The translations under genes were made by a program, and so were the position numbers. Shown in pieces: positions 2,641 through 60,959 of a stretch of DNA of 64,000 nucleotides (its first letter is position 1; the number at the start of each line of letters is the position of its first letter). The stretch is from Ascidiella aspersa (taxonomy: Eukaryota). The notes under the pieces are model-generated. The model did no database searches, was not told the origin of the DNA, and worked only from the letters and a program-made list of their open reading frames with translations. Location: assembly GCA_963924565.1 (NCBI GenBank), contig OZ004609.1:5580001-5644000 (forward strand), in the 5' to 3' direction.

Positions 2641-5269
2641 ATGTCGAATTTGCTTTTATCAAGCAAAAAGCCGACACTCAAGTTTTAATAGAGGAAGCTC
2701 GTACCAGGCGACTATGAAGCGGTAGAATAAATTATAACAAAGCATTTTGTGAAGTGGGGTCCCTTCAGTGTAACGCTAGGAATTACTGTGGAAACCGGGG
2801 CATTCGACCTCGTCGACGACATGTGGGTAAATAAATTTCAATTTAAAACACATTTTTTGCTCTGTGATTGACTCAATTACCAACGTGGACAGTGCGTGTC
2901 AAACGATTCAAACGCGTTGTGTGGTTCATATAGGAATCCGCAGCCATTAGGGGGCAGATACAGTCGACAAGCAAACTTTTAAACAGAGTAAAACGTTTAC
3001 AGATTGTGTCCTTATATTGGCAAAGTATGTGATCGACCTACCAATAGAAATGTGCGGAACGTAAACCAAATACTTCACATTTTTTTCGCGATTCTGTATT
3101 CTGAAACGTACACCTTCCAAGCGATATATTCGGCTTAGAAATAGAAATTATGCTGATATACAAAAATAAATAGTCGTTTATGGTAACTAACCTGTGATAC
3201 GTTGCGTATTTTTTCCTACTTGAAATTAGTACAATCAAGAAAAGAATTGTAAATACCTCCAGGTACTCTTACTGCAGTATATACGACTTAATTTTGCAGT
3301 TTGACATCTCGATTACTCCTCTCTCCCTTTACTTTGCATGCAAATCATCGCTTTGATGTTTTTTTTAGATAATCTAATATAACAATTTTTTTTTTAGATA
3401 ATCTAATATAAAAATAAAAAATGTAAATTTTCGACAAAATAAAAGAACGTGACCCGGAAATGTTCGTTCAGAATAAATAAATATTACAAAAATACGTAGA
3501 ATAATATCGCAATAATGACAAAACGTATTTAAGTGGTTTAAATTGCCTTTGTGTAAATTAGTTTTGTTTTACAGATGGGGGTAAAATATGACCAGTCAAT
3601 ATGCGCGTACGATCCAAGAAACAACAACAAGATAGTTGGAATTCGCTTGGCATCAGGCCCTTACTCGCCGAGAAGAAGAAAGCCAAAGATGGGAGATGGG
3701 ATAAAACGACCTTTACAACTGGCGCAAGCCTACAGGGTAAGTAAATATTCATAAAAATGTAGGTACTTAATAGCTTGGTATAGTTTGCTCCACGAGTCGA
3801 CTGTTTTGTTGTTTTCAGAAATATTATTTGGAACAGCTTGTCCTTTTTATCCAATTCTTATGTTTTAAGGTACAGATAAATAACAGTCAATGTTGTAAGG
3901 ATTTGCTATGGTTTTGTTAGATAATTGAGTGTTTGTTATTTGGTTCAAATGATGTCGTGGAGTCATACGCTGGCTATGAAAAGTTCATGAAAGGAATGAT
4001 GGTATGTGTGGATGAAGAATACCATCAACTGGGCTTGGGCGGAGCATTAATGCACAAGTAAGCTACACCATAATTTACCAATGATATTAAAGATAGGTAA
4101 ATAGTTTTATAAGACAACTAAAATCATTCGAAGTTAGATACTGAGGATGCTCATAGCAGTGAAATATTTTTATCGTATAACATCTAAAGTTTAAACAAAC
4201 TAATTTTCGGTTCACCAAGTTTTGTACTTAGTTTAATCTTGACCATTGATGTGCAACGAGAATCGTTTGCTTTTTACCATTTTAGTTCTGGCTGATGCTG
4301 TTATTCGAAACAAAATTTTGAATAAATAGATAAAGTAGATAAAGTAGTATTAATAACTACCTTTCCAAAACGGATAAAGACCATTTTGCCTTGGGAGTCA
4401 TAAAAGGTTTTCATGTTGGGATAAGACATAGCAAAGTAACAATTGTTCTGCAAGAAAAAACAGTAGTACTCAAAATAAGTTGATAACTTATTACATTTAA
4501 CTGGTCATACCACTATTCATTTGTTGAATTTTAGTTGGGGAGTAGCAACAAAACGGTATACCAGATTAAAATGTGGGCCTAGTAAAGCTGCTTATAAATC
4601 CTTACCTCAATTCAACCTGCGTTATTAAGACAGCTGAATAAACTGATTAAAGCTGTTTTTGTAAACAGAACAGAACCCTCAAGGTAAATGCACAAAAAAA
4701 GCTTCACTTTAAAATGCGTTTAGAAAAAATAAACACTCACAAGCCCCAACACACAATGCAGAGTAGAGACTGCAACAATAATTTTAGCTCAAGGTTGATC
4801 CTGAACATAGACCTTACCTAATAAATTACATTTTTCCGATTATAGGCAAAGCTGAAAATTGTAGTTAAACAATTTGCGCAAAAAAAGACGCCGTCACTCA
4901 ATTAGTGTTATAAATGCAATTTCTTGAGGCGTTTTAAATACGGAGGACGATAGTTATACGAAGAAATGTTTCTTCAGGCCAAAAATCTTGCCCTACCACA
5001 GTATGACACGTAGTAGTGATTTAAAAACAACTATTGGATTGTTTTTAACAGATCGTGGGATCTTGCCAAAGAAGCGAGATGCAAATTTGTCTTTGCCGAG
5101 TTGTCGTCGGCTTACTCAGCTAAGATATTTGCTAAAGTAGGAGCAAATATTATAAAAGAGATTCAGTATTCGGAGTACACGTATTCAGTATCTGGCAAAA
5201 AGATCATAACCCCCGAATTTCTCTGCTAAAACCGTTGTTTTTGATCTCAATGAAAAATCATGGATGTAG
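2641..5269 (+). pseudogene. Insect-AANAT-like GNAT acyltransferase pseudogene (copy A1)
   Basis: Exons 2641-2826, 3575-3736, 3921-4057, 5052-5269 with GT-AG borders. Exon 1 reads MSNLLLSSKKPTLKF**RKLVPGDYEAVE*..., with three in-frame stops. Exon 4 is 11 nt shorter than in paralogs (frameshift). Confidence 0.9.
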
Positions 5270-5500
5270 TGGTGTGAATTTTTGGAAAAGCCATAGCTTC
5301 CAGCTATTGTTGTATTTATACCAATTGCTTTAGTTAGCTAAATGCATAATTGTTGGTTGACAATTAACGTTTATCGATTTTATAATATACGTTGTCGTAT
5401 TATTAATACCGTATCGAGAATGTAGTTGTTCATATCGCATTGAGTATGTAGTTGTTAATATCGCATTGAGAATGAAGTTTTTGTTAATCGTTCTTTTAAC

Positions 5501-5930
5501 ACAGGGGTCGGGACTCGCGAGCCATATATGGCTCTTTTTGTGACGCGGGCTCTTTTATGGCTCTTTCGATAAAAAAATCTTGCTTGCAGAAAAATTTAAG
5601 CTATCATTTCTTTGCATGATCTCAAATAAAACTGCACTCGACCACGGCCGTTTTCCTAAATTTATATTTCCTTTTTTATTACACATAATTGCAAATATTC
5701 GGCGCTTCCCGCGAATCCTATTTGTTATTCGAGACTATTATCCCATTTGAAGAAAAAATCTCTTAACATCCAAAAGGCCCTATTCTTGCAACAATCCGTA
5801 ATCAAAGTTTTGCAAACTTGTTCATTTTTGGTGCGTAGAATATATGTTTTGAACATGAGAACACAATAAACGGCTCTGCTCAATTTACTATTTTTTGCCA
5901 ACATATAGCTAGATGTAAAAAAGTCGACTA
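5501..5930 (+). mobile_element. Truncated hAT MITE related to 10451-10945 (second copy ~25529-25950)
   Basis: Shares the CAGGGGTCGG...CTCGCGAGCCATATATGGCT start and internal sequence with the full element. No right TIR found. Confidence 0.65.
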
Positions 5931-6754
5931 TAGGCATTATTATACAGGCCGAAAATTTATTTCTCTTCTTATCTCTTGTGTTTATTCAGTTTGATGGAAG
6001 GGTGGTAACTGAAAGGAATCGCACAACTTCCTCTATATCATTTTACTTCAAGTAAATTATTTGTACAATTAAGAGACAATACCTTACATATTGATATTGT
6101 ATATTATTACGAACACATTGATAAACCTTCCAATTAATATGGGAAGTTGGTTACTACTGGATAAAAATTTTAGGTCGTGTAGTTGGTCGACGTTCTGTTT
6201 GTTGAGCGACGCCGATGTGGTTGTTCTGTCAATTGCCGCGCTAAATGCAAGGCTAATGCGGCTTCGCAAACCCGTTTTAGTTCAGTGGTTAAGCACCTGG
6301 GCGAACTTGGCGCGCCTAGATTGTTTTGGGGCAATATTTCCGAGAGTTGTGACGATACAAAGTTGAAATTTTTACACAATCCTTATATTGGTTACATCTT
6401 TTCCAGCATTTTAGCGAAAAATATTTATATGCGCAGCAGTTTGGATGTTAAATTAAAAAACAAACTTTTTTGTTTTAACAGGTTTGGCCATTATATAAAA
6501 TCGCACATGTAAACAAACACATAATGTTGTGTTAAAAGTTTGCGACATAAAGTTAAGCACAATATAGTCTTTCTCAAAAGCAAACTTTATATATTTATAT
6601 ACATCCAGGAACGACTTTTTTACCAGTATTATTTTTTCAAACATATATATATATATATTTTTTAAGGCTTGACTTGGACTCACTGCGCCTCAAGTCATTT
6701 CAAAAGACTTGTTTACATCCCTGGGAATCTGCTTACCAAGGATTAGGTAATTTT

Positions 6755-7628
6755 AGAAGGACGCCAGCCATAAGACCAAGATATGAACAACACCAACTTC
6801 AGAATAAAACACAATTCGGAATAGGGCCAAAATAGGACGAATACCAAATGGTATTAGTACCGTCTAAATCGGAATAAGTCCTAAATCCGTCAGAATAAGA
6901 CCTAAAAGGTCAGAATCAGGCCTAAACAACACTTTAACTAACCCCAAACCCAACCCCTAAGTACAACACTCCCGTAATAATTTCAACAATAATCTATTTT
7001 ATAACCTCACCCATTACCCACCAATAACCCCGAATAGGATAAAAAAAATATATAAAAAAAAAGGATAAAAAAGAAAAAATCCGGCGCCAAAACAGCGGTG
7101 CCCTGACGGCGCCGGTCAGACTAAGGCGTCCAAACGTAGTCATAAAAACGGCCGAAACCAGACCAATGGCCCCCGATCGCGTATACCCTCTACCGACAGG
7201 TTCGGGCTTTATTTTGACCATTTAGGCTTTCGACCGATGGACTTAATCTTATTCAGATGAATTTAGGATTTATCCTGATGAATTTAGGCCTTATTACGAT
7301 GAATTTAGGCCTGATTTCGGTCAATTTAGGACTTATTCCATAAATTTAGGACTAATTCCGATGGATTTAGGCTTTTTCCGATAAATTTAGATCTCATTCC
7401 GAAGAATTTAGGCCTTATTTCGACAGATTTAGGTCTTATAGAGACGATTTTGATCTTATACTGTCGTGGATATTATTGCGTATTTGGCTGTACTATGTCG
7501 TTAATTGGTCTTAATACTATGGTTTCCTAGATTTTTACTGCATTAGGTATTGTTGCTTTTTAGGTCTTATTGTGTGTTTCCCCTTTTAAAATTTTTTAGG
7601 TCTTATTGTGTGTTTCCCCTTTTAAAAC
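6755..7628. mobile_element. Foldback/MITE-like element with long imperfect inverted arms and ~21-22 bp subrepeats (copies at ~26785-27657 and, degenerate, ~42670-43290)
   Basis: The left arm (ataagacc, ggaataagtcctaaat) is the reverse complement of the right-arm repeats (gaatttaggccttattccgat, ggtcttattgtgtgtttcccc). There is an internal aacccc/aaccct tract, and the right terminus is tandemly duplicated. Confidence 0.7.
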
Positions 7629-8541
7629 TGCCAAAGCACATTGCAATGTGCATCGTGCATTGACAATTCTATTAACGTGCAAATAGGCTCTATGAACATG
7701 TGCGCACGACTTTGCTTTTCACGTTTCGCATCAATCATGCCGTGTTGTCCTTTTAAACTGCTATGAAATACATATGTATTGTTATGTTACTGTCACGTTC
7801 AACTTTGCGCACAGTAAAGACTGAGGTTAACATGTATTTAACAAAGACTCAGATTAATATGTATATATATACATATATTATATATATGTATATATATTTA
7901 GAAAGATACAGGTAAACATATATTTAAAAGTGAAAAAGGTTATCATATATAGCCAGAAACTCTGCAATATGGTTTAATATTCATTTCGTTTTATTCCAAA
8001 AGTCCTGTTTAGTCACACACTGAAAAAAAATAAATAGGGCAGAACTGTTGAAGGAGATTGCTTGCTAGTGAATTCACTATACGGTTGTTCACAAAACTAT
8101 AAGAAAGCTTTATCAAATTTCATTTTTAACAACGATCGAATTTAGTAGCTAAAAAGCAAGTTGATGGCCGACAATGCATCAATTCGTAGATACGGCTTCT
8201 AAAGTACATTTCAGAACATGATATTATAATGGAGCCTACAGCGTATTATTCTCACACCTACTAAACTTTAGGTCGCTCAATAGTAAAGGAAACTTATATA
8301 ATAAAAAATAAATCTAAATTATTATGCATTTTTTTCTTTATTATACAAACGGACATTTTGAACGATCGCGGTAACTCTAAGTATGTTCAACGCACTGTAA
8401 TTCTAGTGTTCCAAAATTAAAAAAAAACAGTACATTCGCTTTGAACACCAAGAACGGTCTTATTAATTTACAATTGAGTCTGTTTGTATTGGTCAGTGTG
8501 CGTCATTTTGCTAACATTCAGCTTAAGCTAGTGATACTTAA

Positions 8542-8859
8542 CCTTTAGTGGCCCTTAAACGGTTCTTAAGTGGTACGAAGCACGAAAGCAGGGGGTACGA
8601 CATGCAGTGTGAAATTATGCGCTGTTTAGGCATATTTGTGAAGAATGTGTAATTTACAAAAAGCCATAAGAAAAAAGCCTTTAGTAAATTGACTGATCGT
8701 TGAACTAACAAGACTGTTTTTAATGCATTCAACACGTAATTTATAAATACACTGAGTTTAATTCCTACTATTAACATTTTATTTACTTCCGTCGGTCATC
8801 GTAGACAGGAGGTACAATAAAACTCCATAAAAGCACAAAGGGTACGAGCGCTAAAAAAG
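8542..8859. mobile_element. Possible degenerate piggyBac-type MITE
   Basis: TTAA|CCTTTAGTG at the left end and GCGCTAAAAA(A/G)G|TCAA at the right. The TIR and TTAA target site are imperfect. Confidence 0.35.
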
Positions 8860-9182
8860 TCAATAAACACTGCTGCAAGGTAATAATGCAGTACTTCATA
8901 CAACAATGCGTTATTTAAATGAATATATTACGGGTAGATCACAAAACAATTGTTTGAAATAATCGCCATACTTATCCTACAAGCTCGAAATGACCATTTA
9001 AATTTAAACTATTATTAGTCATTTTTACCACTGACATGCAATTCGTTTACCTCATAAATATATAAGCTAATTACATCGACGCATGTAGGTTTCTTTTCAT
9101 TAACCAGGGATCATCCAGCGTAGAGAAAATTTTGTTAACAATAAGCTTGTGAGGCCGGTATTTCACATTACTGGTCGCGATT

Positions 9183-10154
9183 ATGTCGGACATGCTTGTA
9201 ACTAAAAACATGACAAAAGAGTTTTACTGGAGGAAGCTGGTTCCTGGTGACTATGAAGAGGTGAAGGACATCATATTAAATCATACGATGAAGTGGGAAC
9301 CATTATGTGTGACGATAGGACTTACTGCGGAAACCGGCGCATTGAATATTTTTGACGGCATATGGGTAACTATATACTTAATGCGACAAACTACTGTAAG
9401 TCACCTTGGGACACAAGCCCCAAAAAACCCCAAGTGCTGCAATCAAGTCATTTTAAAACAAAAGTCAAAAACAAAAGCAAGGAAAAAAAGCGAAAATTGT
9501 TAACAGAAAAGAAGGAAAGTTAAGAAATACCAAACAGTTGAATGGTGTGCAATGAGTAAAAGTATAGGTGCACAAGGGTGAGAAAAAGTGAAGGAAAGAA
9601 TACAAACCAACAAAAAATATGGACAAAAAACTCCATCTTTTGTTGGTCGGTTCTTATTTAAACTTTTGCCATCTGTAGATCGTTGTTTTACGCTTTTCTA
9701 TGCTTTGTTATGTTGCGTACGCAAACAAGACAAGTACCGGTACCCACTAATTCTTAAGATTCCTAAACCGTGGAGCAACGTCTCTGTAATAATCGCGTCG
9801 AGTTTACGCCATCCAGAGTAAACTCGTTTATGTTTCGGTTGTTCAAACTTCGTCACGGTGATGTTTTAAGATTTTTCACGACATAGCAATCGCTCACAGT
9901 AAAACACAGGAGTCGCAGATCACTGTTGAGCAATCAGCATATGCAAACGGGGGGTGACAATATACTCGTTTTCAAGCTATTGATTTTTGTAGTCAGAGGT
10001 AACTGATTGCCAGTCAATCTGCGCGTACGATCCAAGTAACAACAACAAGATATTTGGAATTCGCTTGGCATCAGGCCCTTACTCGCCGAGAAGAAGAATG
10101 TCAAAGATGGGAGATGGGATAAAACGACCTTTGCAACTGGAGCAAGTCTACAGG
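9183..10154 (+). pseudogene. AANAT-like GNAT gene, 5' half only (copy B1; exons 1-2 open, exons 3-4 absent)
   Basis: Exon 1 9183-9365 (MSDMLVTKNMTKEFYWRKLVPGDYEEVKDIILNHTMKWEPL...GIW) and exon 2 9993-10154. The duplication breakpoint at ~10352 lies in intron 2. Confidence 0.85.
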
Positions 10155-10450
10155 GTAAGCCTTATAAATCTGTGTTAAAAATGTTAAAAATAATTGCCAG
10201 CGCATAAGATATCTTATAATGGTGGTTTAATTACTTGGTTAATGGAGTTTCGATTTGCTTCTGTAAAAATATCAAAATAATAAAGAAATGTTTTGGTCAT
10301 ATTCATCAACATGTGGCTGTTCGATTTTAATCTTTTATCAAGGTGGTCTGCTAAAAAGTGGAATTTTGACCTTGCATTCTGTCAATTAAGCTTCCGCGAC
10401 AGGAAATATTTGCAAACTCTGTGCTGGCCTTCTTACATTAGCTTCTAAAT

Positions 10451-10945
10451 CAGGGGTCGGGAACATATGGCTCGCGAGCCATATATGGCTTTTTTGTGAC
10501 GCCATATGGCCCTTTTGATGAACGAACATTGCTTGCAGATAAATATAATGATTTCTCAGCATAATCTGAATAAAACTGCACGCGGCCACGACCGCTTTCC
10601 TAACTTATTTCTCCTTTTAACACACATAGAGGCAAATTTGTTGGATACTCGCGTGAATCTTATTTGTTTTTCGCAACTGTTATCATCTCTTTACATTCAA
10701 AAGGCCCTGTTGTTTCCAACGAAACTTAGTAATCAAAGTTCTGCAAACTTAGCTAATTCATTTCTTCGTGCTAAGTATGGTATGTTCTGTCCTTTAAATA
10801 TGGACAAATAAACGACCCTGCTCAATTTACTATTTTTTTTTTCAACCTATCACTAGATGTTAAAAAAGTGTTGGCTCTCATAGAAATACAACTAAGAATA
10901 TTTGGCCTTTATGGTTCCCTTAGCTGAAGATGTTTCCGAGCCCTG
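10451..10945. mobile_element. Non-autonomous hAT-type MITE (495 bp)
   Basis: Imperfect TIRs CAGGGGTCGGGAACA / TGTTTCCGAGCCCTG and 8-bp TSD TTCTAAAT. Confidence 0.88.
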
Positions 10946-11640
10946 TTCTAAATTATGCGTTGGTGATGCTTTTTTTTAACCAGTTTGTGTCATTTTTTAC
11001 GGGCCAATCCGCCATCTTTTTGAATGTATTTAAACTAAGATTTCAGTTGCTTATTTGTGCACGACATTCATAATTAACCTATGTTTCCTGTAAGGTTACT
11101 TGTTTTAGGGGTCCCATTTTGACGTCATATTGTGGAGACAGTTCTGAAATATTTCATGCAATCCAGGTAGAGAGTTTTTATCGTTGATTTCATCTTTATC
11201 TCGTTGTCACAGATATATTGGGCGAACAGAACTGTATAATACACCACATGGATCAGGATTGTCGTGTATAGCATCAATCAACTTTAGCATTGCGGCGTTT
11301 ATTGCTTAACCGGGTTTGTGGCAATGGCCATAGCCTTTCGTGCAAGCCAGACGTTAACTTGTATACTCGTTCTCGCTCAGTGACTGGAATATACCACAGG
11401 CGTGTAGCATAGTGGCTGGGGAGTTTAGTGTAAAGCTGGGTTCTAGCGTTCTTGAAATCAGGTGACAAGGTTATCCAAAAATCAAAAAGTAAGAACTTAA
11501 TTTAACCCTCAAAATTTGGCCGAAATGACCTACAGATGTTGATATGCTTTCGTTTGTGCAGAATACATAGTCTTTTAAACTTTGCGTTCCACAGGTACCA
11601 AGTTCAGTGCACCTCGCATCGACAATCATTAACGTGCAAG

Positions 11641-12395
11641 AACGCGCTACGCACGGCTGCAGATGACTTTGGCTTTGTCGTGTCTATTCAATCGAAGCCT
11701 GGGTAAATTGCTCAGTTGTTAAACCGGCAGAGGGAATGGTCATGTTAATATGTTTCTAGCCTGTTTAAGGTTAGGTGTAAGTTCAAAGTTGAGATATAGC
11801 GCGTGCTCGTGAGGTTGTGCAATGCTTTTAGGTTTGCTTTATTTTTCGTTAAAATATGTTGAGCCTGTATTTCTGTCACAACAAATGTTTTGTTCACGAA
11901 TTGACCGCCACAGGGCAAATAACAGATGCTGCGTATTCATGGTAATACAATTTAGAAAAAATGCATTTCTTTAGCGAAATGTGCATGTCTAAAATGGCAG
12001 AGAAAGCTTTCACCGCCCAAAAAACGCGCTACGCACGGTTACAGATGACTTAAGTTTTGACGGGTCTATTCGATCGAAGCCTGGTGTCGATTTGCTCAGT
12101 TGTTAGTCTAGCAGGAGCAAATGAGTTTGCTAATATGTTCTAGGCCTGTTTAACGTTAGATTTAAGTCCAAGGTTGAGATATAACGCGTGCTCATGACGT
12201 TGTGCAATGGCTCCAAGTTTACTTTAATTTTTGTTAAAATATATTGCGTCTGTATTTCTGCCACAAAAATATTTTGTTCACGAAATGACCACCCAAGGGG
12301 AAACAACAAAAGCTGCTTATTCATGCTGAAGCAATTTAGAAAATATTACACTCTTTAAGAGAAAGTGGGCGTGCAAAATTGTAGAGAAAGCTAAA
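11641..12395. repeat. Two diverged tandem units of ~385 bp
   Basis: aacgcgctacgcacgg... at 11641 and again at ~12024, colinear through ...agagaaagct. Related sequence at ~7640-7750. Confidence 0.85.
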
Positions 12396-14286
12396 AACAT
12401 ATATACAAAAATAATAAACGTCATACGGATAAAAATGAAAGATTACTCAATAAGTTTTTAAAAACGTACAAGTTGCTCTCTCGTTTCACAAAGCCGTGAA
12501 CATTTAGTGGACCATCGCTTTTTAGACTGGCAAATTTTATTCGCTTAGTTGTGTCAGTTGAGAATACCTTATGTTGGTCTTTTTCGTTTTATATCGGATA
12601 AAAGTCAATTTTGTTAATAAATTTACACGTTATTCAAAAGTTGTCAAAATTTGAAATTTGTGAACGAAATGCCCAGCAAAATGAAACAAAATTTAAAAGC
12701 GTGTTGAAATTGTCTTTTAGCATAAGGCTTAGCTCGAATTGTTGCGTATCTCTGATTTTTGAAATGTATTAAACAATATTATCTGTATTTTTTCGGTGGG
12801 AATTTGCAAATTATACTATTTCCTATTCCAGTAGTGCGCTAAGGTTTTGTTAAATTTTGCATTTCTTTTTTTCTTGTATTTCAACTTAAACAACCTACTC
12901 AAGATTTTGCTAAATTTCACAACGTCTTGTTTTTGCATTTTTATATTTTTCTCTTTTTTTTTATATTTTTCTCTTTTTGATATAAAATATAACTAAGCAT
13001 TTTCTAGAATCTAGAGTTTTGCATACGCCTGAAAAACACACTGATTTGCGTTGCACCGGTTTTCAGTAAAACGTAAAAAAGTGGCTGCCACACTAAGACA
13101 CCAATTAATGCAGTACTTGGAATAACGCGTTGTTCGAATCAATGTATTCCTAACCGGCAGTAACTGGTCAAAATTATAATTTGATAGGTCAAAATTTATT
13201 CTCTTTTGGTAAAATAATAATGGCCCTAGTCATGACCACAAAAAGTAACTATCAGTGTGCAATGGTCAATTTATCAACCCAACCCTAAAAACATTTAAGT
13301 TGTTACCTTCATAACCCATACCCATTACCCATTCTTACAATTGACCTCTATCAGCAGTGAACTTAGCCTGATTGGATGTCCACGATCGGTATAGTAATAC
13401 ATTCTGCAAGGTATATGATTATAGCTGCAAAGGGGTCTCACGTCGAATATGTGGTCTTGCCCATTGCTGACAGTTAAAGTACGCACTGTCATCTCTTGCG
13501 AAATGGATACTGGAAAGTTCTACGAAGAACAGCGGCGTAGGGAACGGCGTTTATAGAACTTCCAGGACAGCGTAGACCAGCTCGCAGAGGTTTTGTTGTA
13601 ATTTGAGTCCTTTTGTATTGAAGCTTTCAATGCTGTCTCTTCAAAATTGTCTGTTGCGCAGCCGGCCGTTTAGTCGACCGTGTGACGTGTGTACATTTGT
13701 TGTTAGCTAAGTTGTAGAAGAAGTTTATAGCCAACTGCCAAAGCAAACCCGATGGTTTTATTTGCTTGGGGCAATTTGGCCAAAATCCGGATTGAGGTGT
13801 TACGACAAGCGAGGTATTTATTGATAGAAGTAAATACTGATTATACGTTAAACTGCCGGAGAATGTTGCACGCGACAGATTTAGAAAGCAATGGACGGTT
13901 ACACATTTGGGATAGGCAAAACATATAGTTTTGAACGAAGATAAAAAAAGAGAAAGAGAAAGCGAAAAAGCACTGTTTCAAATGGATACAAGCATTAGAA
14001 GAAGTATTTTTAGTCAAAAATTCTAACTTTTTAATTCAGACAGTACACATAAAGTGTGTGTATAGGTGGCACTTTCGCAAAACCGATTTGGTTAAAACAT
14101 TTAGCGCGACCTCTAACAGGCCTTACAACAAGGTTGATATTAGATGCTGCTATTTGTTTTGTATTACCGCCATTGGTATATTCCAACGTAGTAAAACTTG
14201 TTAAGATAAACCTAATACTTTTTTTTAAGTTGTCCCGGAAAAAATTTAGTTGCCCCGGAAAGACATCCACTGTTATAACCACCATT

Positions 14287-21673: not shown

Positions 21674-22153
21674 CAGGGATGTCCAACCTTTTAGCAGAAT
21701 GGGCCGCATTGCCACTTTTAAAATTTCGATGGGCCGCAAAATCTCTCAAATTAAAGGGGTGACGTCAAAAGTTGCGTTATATCGTGACGTCATAAAACAA
21801 CCTAACTTATAAACACCCGTTCTTCGAGAGTAAAATTGTGCGCAAATATGCGAAAATTTAAGTTTTTACGTGTTTGGGCTGACATATTATTTAAAACGGT
21901 CCGGAAAAACACACATTCAGAAAAACAAACATCTTGCTTAGCAATGATGGGTGCACAAAGTGCTCGATGGATGTTGAAATGCGACATTAGACTCGATTAT
22001 AAAAAACACAAGATTATGCCTACATCAAATACTGCGCGATCTTCACGTTTTGATGATAGTCGAAACAACTGTTTTTAATAAAGGCTACTGAAAGTGAGAA
22101 TTAGTGGTGGGCCGCACGTAAATATCAGGCGGGCCGCAGGTTGGACATCCCTG
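21674..22153. mobile_element. hAT MITE (duplicate of 1673-2152)
   Basis: Same TIRs and CTTTAAGG TSD as 1673-2152. Confidence 0.92.
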
Positions 22154-22641
22154 CTTTAAGGCATGCAAACAATATCGTGCTCACGGCTTCCTCATCGCCC
22201 TAAAACCAGATGACATAATCGGTACTTATCTGCTAAATCGATCCAAAAGTTATTTTTAATAAAAAAATTAGCTAAAGTTGTTTTTACGAGATATCAAAAC
22301 CGTCGTGGAAAAACAAATTAAATCGGGGCAAAAAGTTAAAACTGAATGCTAACATCAGCAAAAGTGTAAACGGAACGAAAACGTAGAATAATTGTTAAAA
22401 AAATCTAGAGCAACTGAAGGTTTTAATAGCAATTGTACGTTTACTTTAGGCATCGAGTGAAACAATAAGTTTAGAAAGACAGTCTGAATAAAAACAAAAA
22501 CAAAAAAATTGTAACCTGCGACGTTTATTATGGGTCACGCAGCGTAGTTTTGCAGATCGAAAAGGCCTGTAGGTTTATCCAGCAATTATCCAATCTATCG
22601 AAGATTCTGGATAAAGGGCTTTTTGAACCTTATCTGGAATA

Positions 22642-47900: not shown

Positions 47901-48247
47901 CACAACAAACATAATATTATATTACAATAAACATGTTATTAACCCCTAGTTTAAAGGAACAAATTTTAAATTAAAAATATTCTTTATGCATTTGATAAAT
48001 GCTCATAAAGCTGTATTATTGGCGAAACCTAAGAGTTTAAAACGCAATTAATCCCGAAGAATTGGCCCACAACGAAGCGGCAGAGCACTACATTACTTAT
48101 GACATCATGGCCATACTGTAAAAACAGTACAGATTCGTCAAAAGTTGTTTTTAATTTTATTTCGTTTTAGGGTGTAGATCCATCGAAGAGTTGCAGCAAG
48201 GAAGGAAACTTGTTGTTCCACAGTCCTACTACCGCTCGTTACTATAA
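41929..48247 (+). CDS. HAO1: FMN-dependent 2-hydroxyacid oxidase-like gene (HAO-B), intact, 357 aa
   Basis: Exons 41929-42062, 43307-43458, 43818-43933, 44571-44692, 46121-46272, 46400-46491, 47052-47210, 47668-47737, 48171-48247 total 1074 nt in frame. Motifs [14 protein letters not shown] and [10 protein letters not shown]; C-terminal SLL. The symbol is family-level. Confidence 0.93.
42199..42510 (+). repeat. tRNA-derived repeat unit with halves in permuted order (tRNA 3' half first, 5' half last)
   Basis: gaacctcaccgcagact at ~42211-42227 and agtctgcgtaactcagttggtagag at ~42473-42497. The flanks are homologous to the copies at 49.3 kb and 60.6 kb. Confidence 0.6.
44740..46020 (+). repeat. 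Degenerate minisatellite (ttcaccccaacaaaagttgtgtc-like) in HAO-B intron 4, interrupted at ~45036-45600
   Basis: Recurrent ttcacccc / aacaaa / ttgtgtc motifs at ~22-25 bp spacing. Confidence 0.65.
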
Positions 48248-48249
48248 AC

Positions 48250-48291
48250 CAGTGGTCCCTTCACCTTGCGACCCCAGGTTGAGAATAACTG
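48250..48291. mobile_element. Minimal 42-bp hAT MITE remnant at the HAO-B stop codon
   Basis: CAGTGGTCCCTTCACCT...GGTTGAGAATAACTG flanked by CTATAAAC / CTCTAAAC. Confidence 0.55.
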
Positions 48292-48777: not shown

Positions 48778-51259
48778 CTAAAGTTCTACCACCACTGTTT
48801 TAGCAGAGAAATGTGGAGGTTTGATGTTAGCCATGATATTTTCACCGGAGACAGAGTCACTATACTCGGAATATTTAAACTCCTTTATGACCTTTGCTCC
48901 TTCCAATCTTAGCCGAATATGTTAAAGTCACCTCGGCGAAAAAATATCTGCAACCCCCTTCTTTGGCAAGTTTCAACGATCTGTTAAAAATCAACATTAG
49001 TTTTAGATTTTTTGTGCTGCACCTAACACCTATTTTGAATTGTATTTTTTTCAGTGTTTGATTTAGTTGTTCGTTATTTGGGGATCCGCTTTAATTCAAT
49101 ATTATATAAAAAAAGAAATCTTAAATTTGTCGCTGTATAATCTCTTACAAGCGGCTGAATTGCGTTTTTTTTTCTTTTAACAAACCCTAAACAATTGACC
49201 AACTTAAAAGCCAGTTCGAAACAAAGACAAGACGCGTGTGACGTTTTTGCAAGTTTATTGGTAAATGGGAGAGTTCCAGGGTCATCGAAATCTGTTGATC
49301 AATAGTGCAAAGCAGGGTAGGCTAGAAAACAACTAGCCTGCATTGAGGTTCGAACTCACGACCTCCGATCATATCGGGACGGTCGCTCTACTAACTGAGC
49401 TAAACAAGCTCAGAAGGCAGCGAGTCGAGAAGCAACCATACCCCAATGCTTGCTAGATTCTGTTAGTAACTTCGTATTGAAGGGGATATACAGGATAATA
49501 TTTTACTTAATTAAAGATGCACACATAGGTGTGTTAACAACTGTGATCTAGCGTATATGTTATATATCTTGTGCTGGAAATGTACATCTAAGGTTGGTAA
49601 TGAGTGAAATTCAGAGTCGATGCCCGCAATCTAGTGGAAGTTTCGGCGATACCATGTGAGCATCGGGGCCGATAAAAAATTAATACCAGAATTCGAGTAT
49701 CGAAACAAGTTGTACTGGACATCTGAAAGTGGAATATTTTTTGTATTAATAATTCATAACCAAACTACAGTTTCCCATCAGCGTTAAAAGCGATGTTGGT
49801 TTCTCTAATTTGGTATTAAATAATGTTTTGAATGGACTTGGTTTGACAATAAACTTGTTACTTATTGCAAATTACCCCAGGTATTGGATTACATTAACAA
49901 CACTGCTAACGGAATTTGTCAAACCAAAATTCAAGGGGTTAAAAAGAAAAAGATTCGCCAATTTATGTTTTTTAAAAATAGATTTAGATTTGCTGAGTCG
50001 TACAATATTATTAAAACTTAATTTTAATATTTTTTTTTTATCTTTTTTAACCTGTTAAAACATAAAGTTTATCTTTGCGGCATAGGTTGGCTGTGGCAAT
50101 ATTGAAGTCGTAAAAACAGCAAAGCATTCTTAATACTCTGGATAGATTTGGGAAGACATAACGTTCTTTCGAATGAACAGCATAAATAAACACTAAACTA
50201 GACTATAGGTTGTCGTTTCATCTTACTTGTGAATAAGAGCTCCACCCAAACCCAAATCGAAGAAATCTTCAATCACGGAGACCCCTAAACCTGTCATGAA
50301 CTTTTGTTTGCCAGCATAAGACTCAATGACGTTATCCGGACCGAAAGACAAGCACTGGGACAACTGAAACAATGATACAAAGCTTGGAAAATTGACTCAA
50401 AAAAAAAATTAAATGTTTATTGTCACCGAGATGCTTAATTCTAACAGCTATTGTTTTTATTTATATCAACTGTTGCAAGCAAGAATTGCCTCTGGTAGAT
50501 AATTGTAAATTTAAATAATAAAATATATGCTGAATAGGGAGATAGATTTGTTTTTGCCTAACTCAAAATCGCAAAAGATTTTGGCCTTTTTACTAGATAT
50601 AGTGATTGCTTGCTGATACCCTGTGCAAATAAAGCTGGTTATAAATGGCAACTTAGATAATTAGCCATCCTCTACACACTACACAATGACCCTTGGGCCT
50701 TAGGTTACCTGATTAACATAAAATGTTAACTTCAAACCTACCCTGTATATTTGTTCAAGTTTTTTTTAAGTTTCCTTCCATCACCCCAACTGCATAGTTT
50801 GTTACTTGGCGAATAAGGACCGAATACCATGCGAACGGCAACAATCTTGTTGTTTTTGCTTGGGACGTACGCAGAAATTGACTGGCCATCATTTTTACTT
50901 CCCTAAAACGTACATTCGAGGTTATTAGGGCAGTCCAAACAGCTTTTTTGATCAAACTAATAAACAAATATTGAAACGACAAATGTAAAGCACTTAGAAC
51001 ACTTATCTTATCCGAAATATAGCAGTATTTCTTTCCAAAACTTTTATCAACCGATAAATAAATGTTAGGGCTAGAAAATACTAGTTGTTTACCCAGTATA
51101 TATTGAATTGATCCAATCCGGTGTTTTCCGTTTTATGCAAGTCCAACCGTTGAATTAGAAGGTTCCAATTTAATGTAGTGATTCACCATAATATCTTTCA
51201 CTTCTTCATAGTCATTTATCACGTCTCGGGTTTCCAATTGTTAAAAGCAAGTTTGACAT
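48778..51259 (-). pseudogene. AANAT-like GNAT pseudogene (copy D)
   Basis: Exon relics 51259-51093 (deletion and stop), 50902-50742 (frameshift), 50363-50227 (open: LSQCLSFGPDNVIESYAGKQKFMTGLGVSVIEDFFDLGLGGALIHK) and 48980-48778 (frameshift). Confidence 0.88.
49305..49545 (-). mobile_element. tRNA-derived SINE-like repeat
   Basis: The - strand reads agcttgtttagctcagttagtagagcg...gtgagttcgaacctcaatgcaggct (A and B boxes, acceptor-like stem, poor anticodon arm). Flanks are shared with the other copies. Confidence 0.7.
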
Positions 51260-51396
51260 TGTTGCTTGTCGCCGGTAGCTGTTTTCCTCGTTATTTAACG
51301 GATCGGGTAAACGCTATTTTATCGGGTAAGCGTTATTAAAAGGACAGTAAGATTTTCCTAGTACTCAGAATAGCCTACCTTGAATGACCGTTACAG

Positions 51397-51523
51397 GCAA
51401 GTAATAACAACAGCCAGTCAATAGGATCGTATGAACCGAGCTAAAAAACAAATGTCCTTTCTCACTAAAAAGAAAATCACAAAAAAAAAACGGCAACTTT
51501 TTAAACTTGAACAAATGTTCAGG
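51397..51523 (+). pseudogene. Highly decayed relic of GNAT exon 2
   Basis: acag|gcaagtaataacaacagccagtcaataggatcgtatgaaccgagc (ASNNNSQSIGSYEPS) and ...aaacttgaacaaatgttcagg (KLEQMFR). A possible exon 3 trace, gtatttgagttacatcatttg, lies at ~51868. Confidence 0.55.
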
Positions 51524-52840: not shown

Positions 52841-55800
52841 TCATGAAGTTACTGTTTTGCGTTTGTCGAAAAGACACGACTGTAGAAAGGCTTCGCATTC
52901 TTCTTCGTACAGTTGTGGATACTTTCGAAGGTGAAGAACGTGCTTGGAGTCCTTAAAATCGACGCCTTTAACCGATGTATTGCCGTGTACACGAAGTTGC
53001 TTTATCGCAGCCTCAACATGCTTTGGGCCAATTACCACGTCCACTTGAGAATAAAGAAATAGATGCGGCCATTTCATGTCCGGGGTGACGTGCATTATCT
53101 GTATAACGGATACAACAAGTTTATAAAATCATGAGAGGTTGTTTATAGGTTACATAAAAAGAAAAAATAATACTAATCAGTGTGCGTCACCCAACAAAGA
53201 GAGCAACCATTGCAGTGTTCTAAATATTTCAGTCACTTGTTAAATCACAAGTCCAATTCAGGTATTTTTAAATAACTAACAAGTCATGTCACATTAAAAT
53301 CATACTTAGAGCAGGTCAAAGTGAAAAGCCCCCATTAAAAACGGCTAATAATTAAATTTGGAAACTCGTCACACTATGACCAATATAACCAAATATATAG
53401 CAGATAGTTTATTTAATGTGCAAAAATCAGGAGAAATATCAAGTTTTTAAAACCTAATTAATGGAAACAACTTTTCTTCACCCAACTCATTTGTTCTCAA
53501 GTCAAGTCAAGTCAAGTCAATTTACCCAAAATACTGAAGTCAAGTAAAGTCACCAAAACACATTGACTTAAGTGAATTTAATTGAAGTCATTGTAACGCT
53601 GACTTTGGCAGACACAACCTGCTGTCAATTGCCTCGTATTGTATAATGTGCGTGGGATGTTACAAGCATATAAGGCGAGAAAGTTTTTATAGCAACTACA
53701 ACAATAAACAGACTAAGTTCCTGTATTTTGCTATCAAGCTTACCTGCGTATTGCGCAATTGTTTAACCTGAACTTGTCACATTCGCAAATAAAACATTTA
53801 CAAGGCACCTTATTCGGCGTTATATATCACAGAAATCTTTCCACACAAAACCTTAAATCTTCCCAAAATAAATCAAGTTTGCTCTCATTTGACGGAGTCG
53901 AACTCGGAACTCTCTAAACGAGCGAGATCGTTCGAGAACTAAGTGTGACATATTTGTGCATTACCAAGTTCGTAACCGATAAAGCAGCACATTATAAACC
54001 GTTATGGTAAAAAAGCACAATTTCCACCCATTTAGGTTTACGGGGATAGATAAAATGCTAGGATAATGAGTCGGGGCCGGACACATGACTCGGTTAGTTT
54101 TCTGGGTGTCGGACTAGAGTTTATTTTATCGATCGGAGTCGGATCAGGGTTAATTTAAACGAGGGGTGGGCAACTTACGGTCCGCGGGCCAAATCAGGCC
54201 CGCCAACGCAAATTATCTGGCCCGAGATCTATTTTACAAACTGGGCACGAGGCCATTCTCCATATATTTTTGAATATTTCCACTACGTAAAAGCAAATAT
54301 TTTTTATATGTGATTAATTGTCGATTTGGGTAAAACTATGCTTACATAGTTAACATTTAACGGAGACATTTAACGGAGATAGACCTTTCTGAGTTTGGAT
54401 TTGGCCCGCGACTAGAAAAAATTGCCCACCCCTGATTTAAACCGACTTCGGTTGCAACACTTAGTTACCTCTTCCATTCCTTTGATGTCTTGCGCAAACG
54501 CGGCTAGATGAAGTCGATAAGCCCAGAAAATTGGCCACGTAATCAAAGCCGCAACTTGGCTAGAAATTCCCCATTTTCCCTTTAAATCAGCTACTATTGA
54601 GCCACGACCAAGTTCTAGAGAAAACTCAGATGGGCAGCTGTCCAGGACTGCGCCGATGACGTTGGAGTTTCCCGACTGCAAAAAATCGTTCAATCATTTT
54701 TCCATGTCTCTACAGTAATAAAGTTTGACGTTAGGGACTATAGGTTTAACATCAATTGCCACAACAACTAAACAGGCAAAATCAATTTTTAATTATGTTT
54801 GGGGGAGTTGACATAAAGTTCATTTTACGCAGACTGAACAAGACAGTTTTGTAAACAAGACATTTTGAAATAACTTACGTATGATTTAGGTCTAAATAAT
54901 ATTTATAATAATAGCTCCAAATCAAGTATTCTTGCAAAAAATTAATTCTAGTGATTTGTTTAAAAGCATAAGTTATGCAAGAATTTTTGCCCAAATAACC
55001 TAGGTGACGAGAAAAGTGCACGTAAGTGATTGACTTAAGTCATCAGATCACTGAAATACGATATGCTGTATACTGAAACCCTACCTGTGGTTGAATTTTT
55101 AGAAAGTTGCGGTAAAGATTAAACCCGCCATTGCTGAACACGTGGAACATAATCGGGTTTGACGAGAGGTTGTTTTTTTCCAGAACTTTCCAGCATTTAA
55201 TCGCTTTTTCCGTTCGTGTTTTTGAGTTCGGGTCTGAGAATTTGTTTCAATTATAACAAAACTATTATGACCATTTTATATTATTATTTCAAAAAATCTC
55301 TACTTAAATCAGGTATATCCTGCTTAGCTAACCTAAAGCAAAACAGTAATATTTTTATAACATTATGTTGTTGTTATGTGAGTGTTAATTATTATAGGCA
55401 CTAACATCGTAAAAATTCCATAACGCCGGGTAAACCACAGGTTATTGTGATGCAATCTTTCCTGAGGTACAAGTCCTGATATTTAGTCATCTGTCGACTT
55501 TCAGAACCAACCCATCCAAAAATGAAAACCACCGGGGTTTGGTCTGTAATGTCTGAAAAAAATCGTTACCTTTTTAGTGTCCTTAACCTTGGGGTGAACA
55601 TATCCAATTTAAAACGTCTGTATTTTATCAATAAACCAACAAAACTAGAATAGCCTTACGATTCGTACTCAAACAACAAATTAAAAGAATGGATACTCGA
55701 GTTAAGGCAGTAAAACAAAGCATCTTATTAACATTCGTAAAATTACCACTAAAAGTTTGCCCGTACTCACCTGAAGGAAACTTTACATTTGGAGCTACGT

Positions 55801-56168
55801 CTTTAATGAGGAATCCTGTAAATGCCTATAAATAAAAACATGTAGCCTACCGGGCTTTGCTTTTTAATTCATGGGCCCTGTATTATTTTCAGCAGATTGG
55901 AACAACAAACTGCTTTTGCTTAAATGGGTTCTATATTACTTAACACGAATACTATTTTTAAATATTTACGCTACTTCGCCGTGAAGGTCTTGTTCGAGTT
56001 GAATATTATACCACGAGCGTTTATTTTCTTAAAGATTTATTTCCATTTAAAAATTTAATACAGAAGCATTAGAATGTGGTTTACCTTTTGGAAGAACGAT
56101 ATTAACCTTACTGTAAAGTAACGAACCAAGTATAGAAGTTTGGATCCAATGGTATACAAAATATCCAT
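52841..56168 (-). CDS. TMEM53: TMEM53 / DUF829 alpha/beta-hydrolase-fold protein, ~299 aa
   Basis: Exons 56168-56085, 55825-55771, 55552-55406, 55233-55085, 54675-54469, 53098-52841 total 900 nt in frame. Motifs PVVFIFGWVG, FHVFSNGG, VLDSCP, LFLYSQVD and SKHVLHLRKYP. The first two exons are less certain. Confidence 0.9.
54161..54434. mobile_element. hAT MITE (274 bp) nested in an older ggagtcgg-rich element
   Basis: TIR GAGGGGTGGGCAA / TTGCCCACCCCTG and TSD ATTTAAAC. Confidence 0.88.
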
Positions 56169-58735
56169 TTTGTCACAAATCTAAGCAACACCTGCAAAAG
56201 CAATTATGCGAAATTAATATTATCTTGAGCACTACTTCAACCAATTTCCCTATTCGATACATATAGGTAATAAGCTTTTCCACAAATTTAGCATCAGGGG
56301 CGGATTAGGATTTATATTGGGGAGCATGAGAATTTCTTAAGATGTAAAGGCCCCAGAGAGCAGAATAAAAAATGCAGTTGTTACAAAACATAAGTCCCCA
56401 AAACAAACTAAATGACGCCACAAAGCCACAAAAATTCAAGCAGACCGCGAAAATATTTGTACTTAAGTAGGAAAAATATGTAACTATACATTTTGCCATA
56501 TAGCCTCGTCTACCCGCAGCTTTGCTTGCTGCATTCTGGTTAACAACGCAAATAACTTCATATTGAAGAGGATCTACAGTAACATATTAGGGTAGTAAAA
56601 ATACAAAAACAAAAAAATGCGTAAAGCGATCATTTTCTGTTATGCAATAAACCCTTGGCCTAAACAAAAAATTGGCAGACGCAAATGTATACTACATGAA
56701 CTTGTACTTGGAAGTATTTCTTTTTGTGTTTCATTTGTTATCTATATATTTATTGGTTGTAGTTCACCTCAACGTTTAAACAAGTATAAAAGAAGGGGAG
56801 CATCAAATAAAGCTTACTAGGGGTTTGTCAAGAATAATATTTGTAGCAAAGTATATGCGGTACTTGCAAAAACAAATTAATTTCACCAAGCAACATTGTT
56901 TATTAAAATCGTATCCGACCAGTTCGGGCTTGCAAAATTGCAGCTGTATAACAAATCTTCACTAACTCACCACTTAACAGCATCACTGTGTTAATCTAGC
57001 TTACCGGTAATTGTATTTGTAAATTAGCGCAAGCTATATGCTATACAAACCGCCTGCGTGTAATAGCTGCTTTGTAACGGAAGTCACGAACGATTACAGC
57101 TCAGTATTTCACGTCGCGTGTAAGCATGACATGCTAGCTCTGGTTTGTTTGAGATTTTTGACATAGTCTTACAATGTTTTTACTGAAAGGCTATCATCAA
57201 TCAAAGAAATTGTACAATGACGTTCTAATAGTCGGTATACTGTTTCAATGTTTCTTTTAAAGTTTTTAAATATTTTTTTGGAATATCGTAAGTTCTGCGA
57301 TGAGTTGACCTGTTCAGCTAAACTTCGGTCTATTCTACAAGTAACATCTCAATGTACACTTTCAAACACAACTGACGTTTCATATTGGCAAAATGGAATT
57401 AAATACTGCATATAAATCTAAGTAAAGTTGTTGCGCCCCCGCCGCGAACTGCGCACTGGGGCCTGGCCCCTGACCCCATACAGTTGCCCGGCGGGTCGCA
57501 ACCGCGCGAGTTCTTGTTGTTTGCAAAGGTTTCTGGTCAGATATGCTACCTGTCATAACCACAACTAAAATTCCAATCAAAAGTATATTGTTACAACGAA
57601 TTAAAACGTTATCAAATAGCATTAGTGAACGTTATTTTCAAGTTAATGTGAGACAGGCAGCCACCGCCTATTGCAGCGACTGTCGGCTAAAACTTCGCAA
57701 AAGACTTCTCTAGAGAAAAAGCTCGGGAGTAAGAGGTCAGCAAAACAAGTGACTTGTTTTGCAGAACGTGAGAATATCGCCCACAAGACTGACAGTTATA
57801 GATTACGAGATTAAAGGTTACATGTCAAGTTTGACACGAGGCGAACTAAAGCAGAAAAACTTAGGAATTTTACACACAACAATACAGAAAACTTTACATC
57901 ATCAAATATGTTATTTTGTAACTGAAGAACATATTTGGCAAACGAAAGCTGAAACGCGTAATCTAAAACCCTATTTATCACATCGTAAAATCACTTAATG
58001 AACTCTAAGATTTGGCTTATGGCAATTAATTAATTTAGGTGTTTAAGTGTTGATAAACACGTAACAAAAGTCCAATAGAGTTTTCATAGTAACAGTAATT
58101 TTACTCAGTGAGTTTTGTCCTGCCAGCGCCAGTTATTCATACAGGATATTTACGGCGTGGTCAGTTTTCGAATCGGGCTGTGTTTTGCCTTTAGGCTAAC
58201 AGTCGTTTCAGAAGCACATCGAAGCATGTTTCATATACGTTACATACATAACCATTTTGTCCTGGCTCTACAAACAGTTGAACCTACTGGCGTCTCGAAT
58301 GGACTCCAGGGAAATAATTAGACGCCACCAAGTCCCGAGTCTAACCCCGAATTCGCAGTCCCTATTTCTCCCTCTTTGGTATACAGCAGAAGTGCGCAAA
58401 GCACTGCCCCATTTCTGTGAATTATCTTGATTAACAGTGATATAAACGATAACCGCCTTGTATTGATATTGCTAATTTTGAATTCGAATTTGTAGTTTGT
58501 CCCAAGTAACAATTTCTGTGAACAAGTTTCCGACAAGGCTATAGAAATATATTTCGTAAGTGGTGCAAATCCCTCATAACACTATCAACTGTTAGTCGTT
58601 AATATAGTATACAGTGCTAGTGCGACAAAGGATTTTCAGGCATTTATTAACTAAATTGCCTCAAAAACTGTTTAGGCAATTGAGAGCATAAACAGCCTGC
58701 TAAATAACACCACACAAACAGCTACAAGTGGGAAT

Positions 58736-60959
58736 TTATTTATAAAGTTCGATAACCGCAGTTTTAGCAGAGAAATGCGGAGGTTCACATTGAGCCATGA
58801 TCTTTTCACCCGTTACCGAATCCTCGTACTCCGAATACAGAAGCTCTTTGAGAAATTTCGCATCGTGGTGTTCAAATATCTTGGTTGAGTAAGCCGAAGT
58901 CAACTCGGTAAAAAAATACTTACAACCAGCCTGTTTGGCAAGCTCCAGTGATCTTTAAAGAAATACATTAAAGTTTTAAAAAAAGCATTGTGCAGTTTGT
59001 GTAACACTGCTGTGGTGATAAAACTGGTGGTTAACAGGTTATATGATTTATTAAAACAGGCTCCGTAAAGACCCTGCTAGAAAAATGTTCTGTTATTAAA
59101 AACAAAAATGCTCTTATTACAAAGTCTTGAGCTTAAAATCAATTGCCAAAACCCCTTGGATATAGAATACCTTATTTCTATGACGCTGCTATATTTTGTC
59201 ATAGCGGGACGTGTAACACAAGACAAACTACGGAAACCCAAAATTATTGTATGATGTACTGCACCAATATACAACTGAATTAATAGTTGAAATGCATTCA
59301 TGAATATGGCAGGATGGTCTCTAAAACACGAAAATAGCCCGAACAAAATTTTTTTTTTTCTTAATATTATTTGACCGAAACGCCATTCCATTTTACTGTA
59401 ACCACTAGTTTTACCTTACTTGCTAGTTAGAGCTTTAGCCAATCCATAACAGAAGTATCCTTCAACAACGGAGACCATCAATCCTTTAACAAACGTATGA
59501 TCTCCAGCGTAGGACTCCACGATTTTGTCCGGGCCGAACGACATACACTCCATCATCTAAAAAAAGACGAAGAAACATTTACTGGTATAGCTGTTGTGAA
59601 CGCAGTAGGTAATAGTAATAACAAAACGCCTGGTACTGCAGCTCATCTCTCTAGAAAGTCAATTCAGAATACCAGATTTGTAAGTCAAGGAGGTCAGTAT
59701 TTTACTTACCTGGAAATCTTTACTTGTTAAATGACTTTATTAACTGTATTAATCCATGGGTACGTTGCTTACTTTTACATTGAAATTAAAAAAATAATTA
59801 ATCTCATCACTTGTTGTATGTACGCCGTACGGACATCGATTAAAATGCTTTACTATAGTGGTATAAGGAAACGTAGTATATTGTGATGCGCTGCTGTATA
59901 TATTGTGAAACGCAGTTTGTAGCGATACGCCTTCATCATTTGCCTAATTTTAAACAACGTTTGTTGGTTTACAATTATAATTATGGACTCAATGTGATCT
60001 GATGTGAAAAAAATTAGTCATTGAAAAGTCATTTTGGTTAACAACAAGGGCAACTGAGGTACTTACCCTGTATATTATCTCAAGTTTTATTGGTTTCTTT
60101 TGTTGATTTCCCCAGTTGGATGCTTTATTGCTTGGTGAGTAAAGGCCTGATACCATCCAAATAGCCACAATCTTGTTGTTTTTGCTGGGATCGTACGCGC
60201 ATATTGACTGGCCATCCTTTACACTTAACTGTACATCAAAATCGTACATTTTAAATAAGAACTATATAAACACATTTTTTGAGTAAAATATTTTGCAATC
60301 TCCATAGTGTCATAAAGACAATAAATTGGACATATAGATCTGTAAATAAAACATTTTCATCTTATGCCACAAGATTTAACCTTTATTATTTACAATTCAA
60401 CACCTCATCGGTTTCTGAATTTTGCGCATGGGTAGTCGGACTTGGGACTTGGATACTTTTACTTGAGTGTCGAGTTTCGAGTCCGATTCAAGCCAAATAA
60501 ACCTATTCCGTGGAGACGCGAGTTTGCAACACTGCTTATACCCAGGTAAAGACCGGAAGCCTTCGACAGATTAACCAAATCGGAGGATCAAACATGCAAG
60601 CAAGGTAGGCTAAAAAAACAACTATCTGCGGCGAGGTTTGAACTCACAACCTTCGCCGTACCCGGACCGTCGCTCTACCAGCTGAGCTACAAAGGCTCAC
60701 AGGGGAGCACGTTGAGAACCAACCATGACGCCCTTGCTTGCAGCATCCTGTTACAAACAACTTCATATCTCACCCAAATATCGCTGACAAGGTCCAATGC
60801 CCCGTTATCCACTGTAAGTCCAACTGTAGAATTAAGGGGCTCCCACTTTATGTAATGATTTAAAATGACATCCTTCACTTCTTCAAAGTCGTTTGTAACT
60901 AGTTTCCTCCAAAAAAATTTACGTTTCGCGTTTTCAATTGTCAAAAGTAAGTTCGGCAT
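58736..60959 (-). CDS. Insect-AANAT-like GNAT acyltransferase, intact, 233 aa (copy E)
   Basis: Exons 60959-60774, 60228-60067, 59556-59420, 58952-58736 total 702 nt in frame, GT-AG. Motifs HYIKWEPL, VSVVEGYFCYGLAKAL, ELTSAYST and EPPH. Confidence 0.9.
60590..60768 (-). mobile_element. tRNA-derived SINE-like repeat in intron 1 of copy E
   Basis: The - strand reads agcctttgtagctcagctggtagagcgacgg...gtgagttcaaacctcgccgcagat. Flanks are homologous to the 49.3-49.5 kb copy. Confidence 0.7.

Follow-up and report, generated by a model that had tools for sequence, protein, structure and literature searches.

The DNA considered here, a 64,000-nucleotide stretch referred to as the window, is a chromosome piece (C3:5,580,001-5,644,000) of the 308.6-Mb, 75-contig assembly of the ascidian Ascidiella aspersa. 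It has 35% G+C, contains no N, and carries genes of three enzyme families: seven loci of insect-type AANAT-like GNATs, two head-to-head hydroxyacid oxidase (HAO/FMN_dh) genes and one DUF829 (TMEM53-family) gene. All three families had been named in an initial annotation made from the letters alone, and their presence is confirmed by homology-mapped exons and by PF01070 and PF05705 matches above the cut-off. That annotation read the genes as a candidate small-molecule pathway. The reading favoured here, to which a probability of about 0.6 is given, is that this segment of the ascidian chromosome is an island prone to duplication and made up of lineage-specific enzyme paralogues, with no demonstrated pathway. 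The limits of the candidate, 2641 and 60959, are those of the first and last GNAT start codons, and the searches of the window were run exon by exon, without joined spliced models.

The GNAT loci were located with a first-exon peptide search, which placed them at 2641, 9183, 14287, 22642 and 29213 on the forward strand and at 51259 and 60959 on the reverse strand. Comparison of the paralogues gave a four-exon gene structure of roughly 62 + 57 + 46 + 72-76 codons. The seven AANAT-like GNATs of the initial annotation were thus found as loci, but their functional count had been overstated, as two are intact, one carries a single TAA, one is truncated and three are pseudogenes. Further, three of the seven loci stem from one recent tandem duplication of 18-20 kb. 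The intact genes are GNAT-3 (14287..19549, + strand; exons 14287-14472, 14941-15102, ~17988-18124 and 19321-19546) and GNAT-7 (58736..60959, − strand; homology-defined exon cores 60959-60774, 60231-60061, 59556-59419 and 58954-58739, with splice ends not uniquely resolved). Both have open exons with GT-AG solutions at each junction, and GNAT-3 retains the EPL glutamate and the G-x-G motif. GNAT-5 (29213..31782, +) has four exons, of which the motif A exon is interrupted by a single in-frame TAA at 30715. GNAT-2 (9183..10160, +) is a 5' half consisting of exons 1-2 only, truncated by the tandem-duplication junction at 10352; its exons 3-4 are not present downstream, where the sequence past 10354 is the upstream region of the next unit. 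Among the pseudogenes, psiGNAT-1 (2641..5248, +; exons ~2641-2826, 3572-3742, 3921-4058 and 5050-5248) has three in-frame stops in exon 1 (2686, 2689, 2728) and a frameshifted last exon. Its duplicate psiGNAT-4 (22642..25296, +) has in-frame stops at 22690 and 22729 and reads GPF at the EPL motif, and psiGNAT-6 (48781..51259, −) is frameshifted in exons 1 and 4. The C-termini of the window copies read SWM, SWL or LYK, which lends no support to a peroxisomal connection between these GNATs and the oxidases. Another intact GNAT copy lies just left of the window (-3867..-472, counted from the window start), and further GNAT remnants and two more DUF829 genes are also found on that side.

The recent duplication is seen in a self-blastn comparison, in which -7614..10352 equals 10354..30382 in collinear blocks at 94-98% identity. 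The first unit begins ~7.6 kb left of the window, so that only its right-hand part (1..10352) lies within it; the second (10354..30382) contains GNAT-3, psiGNAT-4 and the first half of GNAT-5. The units have diverged by 1-1.7%, in exons and introns alike, and the psiGNAT pair of the two units has identical introns. Unit 2 also carries an insertion of ~2.1 kb at 15377-17470, in GNAT-3 intron 2, that the sister unit lacks; inside this insertion lies a 330-bp internal repeat (16116-16444 versus 16911-17248, 81%). The older GNAT paralogues show ratios of nonsynonymous to synonymous divergence (dN/dS) of 0.2-0.4 at dS 0.4-1.5. Since the ratios of the GNATs, like those of the oxidases described below, are well under 1 over such distances, the old copies have been under constraint. 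The GNAT loci are a birth-and-death array.

Assigning the GNATs to a family required profiles built from several copies. A Pfam search of each of the four exons singly returned no family, structure-database searches with single exons and with exon-1 and exon-3 profiles gave nothing significant, and a word-based homologue search with the exon-4 alignment gave no match in the length range searched. With an exon-4 profile, the top four matches in the structure database were insect AANAT-like structures, aligned at their C-termini, the best being AgmNAT (E 0.005). The same profile, searched against 1.84 billion protein representatives, recovered 57 proteins, all of them ascidian proteins and their relatives, and the nearest relatives are proteins of Phallusia mammillata, Styela clava and Ciona intestinalis. 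An alignment built from 19 full-length homologues matched Aedes aaNAT2 (E 5e-34), Drosophila Dat (1e-28), aaNAT5b, AgmNAT and aaNAT7 over the whole length, so that the full-length similarity of the window GNATs to Dat and the aaNATs is indirect, by way of this ascidian homologue profile. The structures matched were 4fd5, 3te4, 6v3t, 4fd4, 5k9n and 4fd7, at E 5e-34 to 2e-16. Positions 5-47, 57-88 and 115-147 of the homologue alignment correspond collinearly to window exons 1, 2 and 3, with probabilities of 95.7, 95.7 and 82.9%. Further, a Styela homologue resembles arthropod aralkylamine N-acetyltransferase clusters in its features (0.98) and predicted structure (TM 0.86).

In Dat, the EPL glutamate acts as general base. 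All five open GNAT copies that were aligned have WEPL, which falls on the eP of the family profile, and in pseudogenes the motif reads GPF. In motif A (Q/R-x-x-G-x-G/A), G-L-G or G-L-A is kept and the place of the leading Arg/Gln is taken by F, Q or H, a loss that the ascidian homologues share. With the catalytic glutamate and the CoA-binding G-x-G/A loop both kept, the intact GNATs most likely acylate an amine, with acyl-CoA as the donor. The family extends well beyond the window: a last-exon profile gave at least 80 matches across the genome in ~35 clusters, 11 of them in C3:1.4-9.2 Mb. Many of these are intronless open frames of 230-290 codons, with big arrays of such frames at C6:27.57-27.67 Mb, C6:26.06-26.11 Mb and C1:31.53-31.59 Mb. 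In Ciona, two insect-type AANAT genes have been reported (PMC4394704).

Between the two groups of GNATs lie the oxidase genes HAO-A (35422..39730, exons 35425-39730, −) and HAO-B (41929..48247, +), each a nine-exon FMN_dh gene, arranged head to head with start codons 2.2 kb apart. PF01070 is matched above the cut-off in both, with exon-wise scores of up to 81 bits, and every exon is open with GT-AG solutions at every junction. Residues were numbered with human HAO1 structures as anchor, together with an alignment of the paralogues. The initial annotation was right that both oxidases are altered at carboxylate-binding positions, R167K occurring in both and Y26F in HAO-A. HAO-A also has D160G and R263H, with H260 kept. 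HAO-B has W110F and D160E, retains Y26, Y132, H260 and R263, and its loop 4 is ~8 residues shorter than that of HAO-A. The genome holds five HAO genes, of which the copy at C1:30.93 Mb is canonical, with both Tyr26 and Arg167. Y26F and R167K are also found in the paralogue at C3:8.98 Mb, R167K being common to all three chromosome-3 oxidases. The C-terminus is SLL in HAO-A, HAO-B and the canonical C1 copy, which differs from the S/A/C-K/R/H-L/M consensus of the type 1 peroxisomal targeting signal.

The chromosome-3 HAO paralogues are old, with dS of 0.5-1.0, and their dN/dS of 0.2-0.35 (0.1-0.35 for HAO paralogues in general, 0.1-0.26 for HAO-A versus its paralogues) indicates purifying selection; HAO-A has no higher dN than HAO-B or the C3:8.98-Mb copy. 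That HAO-A is a dead pseudogene is excluded by its open frame, its GT-AG solutions and this lack of acceleration. D160 and R263 are catalytic in the HAO family. With neither present in HAO-A, canonical oxidation is unlikely, and the loss of three further active-site residues under purifying selection points to a non-canonical role. HAO-B probably still oxidises a 2-hydroxy acid, with altered specificity. The two genes are also unevenly alike in their DNA: exons 2 and 7 are 94-97% identical (39373-39541 versus 43295-43463; 36346-36544 versus 47050-47248), and the other exons 66-84%. This mosaic suggests patches of gene conversion between HAO-A and HAO-B.

The third family is represented by a DUF829 gene (52844..56168, −) with four mapped exons at 55565-52844 and a probable start exon near 56168, conserved in two paralogues 16-24 kb left of the window. 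All its junctions allow GT-AG solutions, and exons 1, 2 and 4 exceed the PF05705 cut-off (27.3, 29.3 and 54.3 bits). DUF829 proteins are classed as alpha/beta hydrolases and are thought to be membrane-associated esterases or lipases (PMC11878206). The Ser-Asp-His motifs claimed for the hydrolase were found in the expected order as FSNGG, YSQVD and SKHVLH, and form a putative catalytic triad. Its naming as TMEM53 holds at the level of the DUF829/PF05705 family; however, the gene is one member of a family with 19 exon-level matches in five genomic clusters, and belongs to a tight local clade.

Expression was assessed over 55-61 kb only, from ~6% of the reads (7.8 million) of one RNA run of the species. 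In this sample the DUF829 5' exons had zero reads and GNAT-7 had zero to ~2. Substantial RNA depth was confined to two places, a repeat at 57401-58200 and a tRNA-like short interspersed element (SINE) at 60601-60800, and a separate DNA run from a different sample covers 55-61 kb at unique depth. The first of these places is an 800-bp high-copy repeat between DUF829 and GNAT-7, identified from the read-depth table (57401..58200, no strand assigned). The second includes the tRNA-like head of a high-copy SINE in intron 1 of GNAT-7 (60623..60696, −; Rfam tRNA, 32.1 bits). DNA depth over both is ~100x unique.

The proximity of the three families is repeated elsewhere on the chromosome. A second neighbourhood at C3:8.97-9.10 Mb contains the third HAO of the K167 type together with three DUF829 genes, and also has intronless AANAT-like genes 3-5 kb from two of the DUF829 genes. 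An inverted duplication of one DUF829-GNAT pair is present there. HAO, DUF829 and GNAT genes occur within ~35 kb of each other at both C3 loci, although the second locus as a whole extends across 120 kb and has transposons and unrelated genes interspersed. The clustering proposed in the initial annotation thus stands in so far as the families lie together more often than chance and do so at a second locus, but most of the GNAT copies are dead.

The surroundings of both loci were also surveyed. Transposon-like frames flank the two neighbourhoods. On the left flank of the window (~-39492..-39055, −) lies a Cys-rich frame with no Pfam match and an unconfirmed resemblance, by eye, to GIY-YIG; a piece of the second locus (L011:2977-4715, −) resembles a retroviral gag-protease, again by eye and unconfirmed. 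Within the window, none of ten open reading frames of at least 90 amino acids outside or opposite the coding exons reached the cut-off in a Pfam scan. One marine metagenome contains a small share (0.12) of the sampled words, and metagenome contigs with a homologous GNAT had no HAO or DUF829 within 12 kb.

In the favoured reading, the island would have three components: a birth-and-death tandem array of insect-type arylalkylamine N-acyltransferase-like GNATs; two old HAO paralogues placed head to head, members of the chromosome-3 clade that R167K defines, with HAO-A in a non-canonical role and HAO-B oxidising a 2-hydroxy acid with altered specificity; and DUF829 hydrolase-like paralogues. Each enzyme would act on its own substrates, and the families would adjoin because all of them expanded by local duplication within one 10-Mb part of the chromosome that is rich in gene families. 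This reading draws on the mostly broken GNAT array, on the share of it owed to one recent duplication, on the genome-wide numbers of GNAT, HAO and DUF829 copies, on the age and constraint of the paralogues and on the near absence of RNA reads from GNAT-7 and the DUF829 5' exons.

Several results weigh against this reading. HAO and DUF829 genes lie within 25 kb of each other at two of the four HAO loci, for which p is ~1e-5 under a genome-wide null, 7e-4 under random placement within C3:0-10 Mb and 4e-3 if the two loci are counted as one event. The second-locus GNAT belongs to a distant intronless subfamily and is no sister of the window copies, and in the tree the DUF829 genes of one C3 locus do not come out as closest relatives of those at the other, so that simple block duplication cannot account for the whole pattern. 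Further, an arylamine N-acetyltransferase gene (PF00797, E 8e-22; ~72939-74377, +) lies 9 kb right of the window and adds to the amine-acylation theme. On the side of the favoured reading, an approximately unbiased test did not reject that the DUF829 genes at both loci share one origin (p 0.07). Taking the non-sister tree and this test together, a simple block duplication of the whole neighbourhood is neither supported nor rejected. The HAO-DUF829-GNAT linkage is real, and fits an old shared block in a duplication-rich region equally well as it fits selection for clustering.

Among the other explanations, the one that survives best holds that the genes form a co-regulated neighbourhood for amine conjugation or xenobiotic defence, sharing chromatin or induction and forming no linear pathway. 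The nearby arylamine N-acetyltransferase would suit such a role, every family here is an expanded multi-copy metabolic family, and low basal expression is compatible with inducible genes. However, the theme was recognised post hoc, and arylamine N-acetyltransferases (at least 16 genes in seven clusters in this genome) and GNATs have members at many other loci without HAO or DUF829. We regard this explanation as possible but doubtful.

It is somewhat less likely that the two 18-20-kb units are an assembly artefact, that is, two haplotypes of a highly heterozygous animal placed in tandem, which would lower the true count to four GNAT loci and is compatible with any of the other explanations. Their direct adjacency, the identical introns of the pseudogene pair and their 94-98% identity, which is within the range of ascidian heterozygosity, would be expected of haplotypes. 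However, the variation of identity from block to block, the 2.1-kb insertion and a junction that truncates a gene all fit a real duplication by unequal crossover.

Least probable is the pathway itself, in which the GNATs would N-acylate an arylalkylamine with a 2-hydroxyacyl group, a re-tuned HAO would oxidise this to an alpha-keto or enol amide, and tailoring or release of the product would fall to the DUF829 protein. It draws on the adjacency, twice on one chromosome, of three unrelated enzyme families whose GNATs are non-sister and whose DUF829 genes are not clearly sister, on the absence of the distal carboxylate-binding arginine from all three chromosome-3 oxidases under purifying selection, and on the taxon, which is an ascidian, as had been guessed in the initial annotation. 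The proposal that the changed residues suit a masked-carboxylate (amide) substrate is not supported: Lys167 keeps the positive charge and thus gives no pointer to a masked carboxylate, and HAO-A has lost the catalytic D160 and R263 as well, so that the changes do not point specifically to amide substrates. Further, five of the seven GNAT loci are broken, GNAT-7 and the DUF829 5' exons are essentially without reads in the one RNA run, and the second locus, at 120 kb, is diluted by transposons and unrelated genes. An animal-encoded pathway in which the GNATs, the K167-type HAO clade and DUF829, united at two loci in a manner unlike simple copies, act sequentially on N-acyl amines is improbable to the same degree.

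Metabolic gene clusters that truly combine several families are rare in animals, and only a minority of the amide natural products of ascidians have a known genetic origin; a cluster at this place would be valuable, if true. Were the pathway to exist, HAO-A, conserved although it lacks D160, R263 and Y26, would be either a novel type of FMN_dh enzyme or a partner with a regulatory function. The results that were unexpected concern the families themselves. A clade of HAOs, HAO-A especially, has replaced a near-universal substrate-binding arginine by lysine while under purifying selection. The AANAT-like genes are hugely expanded in this ascidian, with at least 80 matches against two for Ciona, and turn over fast. 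The non-random proximity of the families offers concrete candidates, and is not yet a pathway finding.

Set beside known systems, the locus resembles animal metabolic gene clusters, of which the octocoral terpene clusters are an animal-encoded example, in that non-homologous enzyme genes adjoin and do so again at a second locus. It differs in that most copies of one family in the window are pseudogenes and in that it is known here from genes alone. The DUF829 gene shares with TMEM53/DUF829 proteins the PF05705 match above the cut-off and the order of the Ser, Asp and His motifs, but it belongs to a lineage-specific expansion (the 19 exon-level matches), and the second-locus copies have Cys at the Ser position (FCNGG).

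The oxidases match human HAO1, rat HAO2 and spinach glycolate oxidase in all nine exons, and HAO1 is the best structural-database match for the five exons searched, which include exons 1 and 6 of HAO-A and exons 3 and 4 of HAO-B. His260, Tyr132 and the Lys of PIVLKG are kept. In contrast to those enzymes, both window oxidases have R167K, to which HAO-A adds Y26F, D160G and R263H, whereas HAO-B has W110F, D160E and a shorter loop 4; their C-termini are SLL as opposed to SKI or SRL.

The closest parallel for the GNATs is with the insect AANATs (Dat/AANAT1, AgmNAT and Aedes aaNAT2, 5b and 7), to which they correspond in length (~215-240 residues) and in collinear similarity throughout, and with which they share the EPL glutamate, the G-x-G/A loop and the C-terminal TSxYS segment. 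Insect AANATs are likewise known as tandem paralogue arrays. However, the first Arg and Gly of R-G-x-G are replaced in the window GNATs (F/Q-x-x-G-L-G/A), and their individual exons are too diverged for Pfam. Within their own genome, their four-exon structure sets them apart from mostly intronless paralogues, and relative to the two genes of Ciona (PMC4394704), the AANAT-like family of this ascidian, with its 80 or more matches, is far larger.

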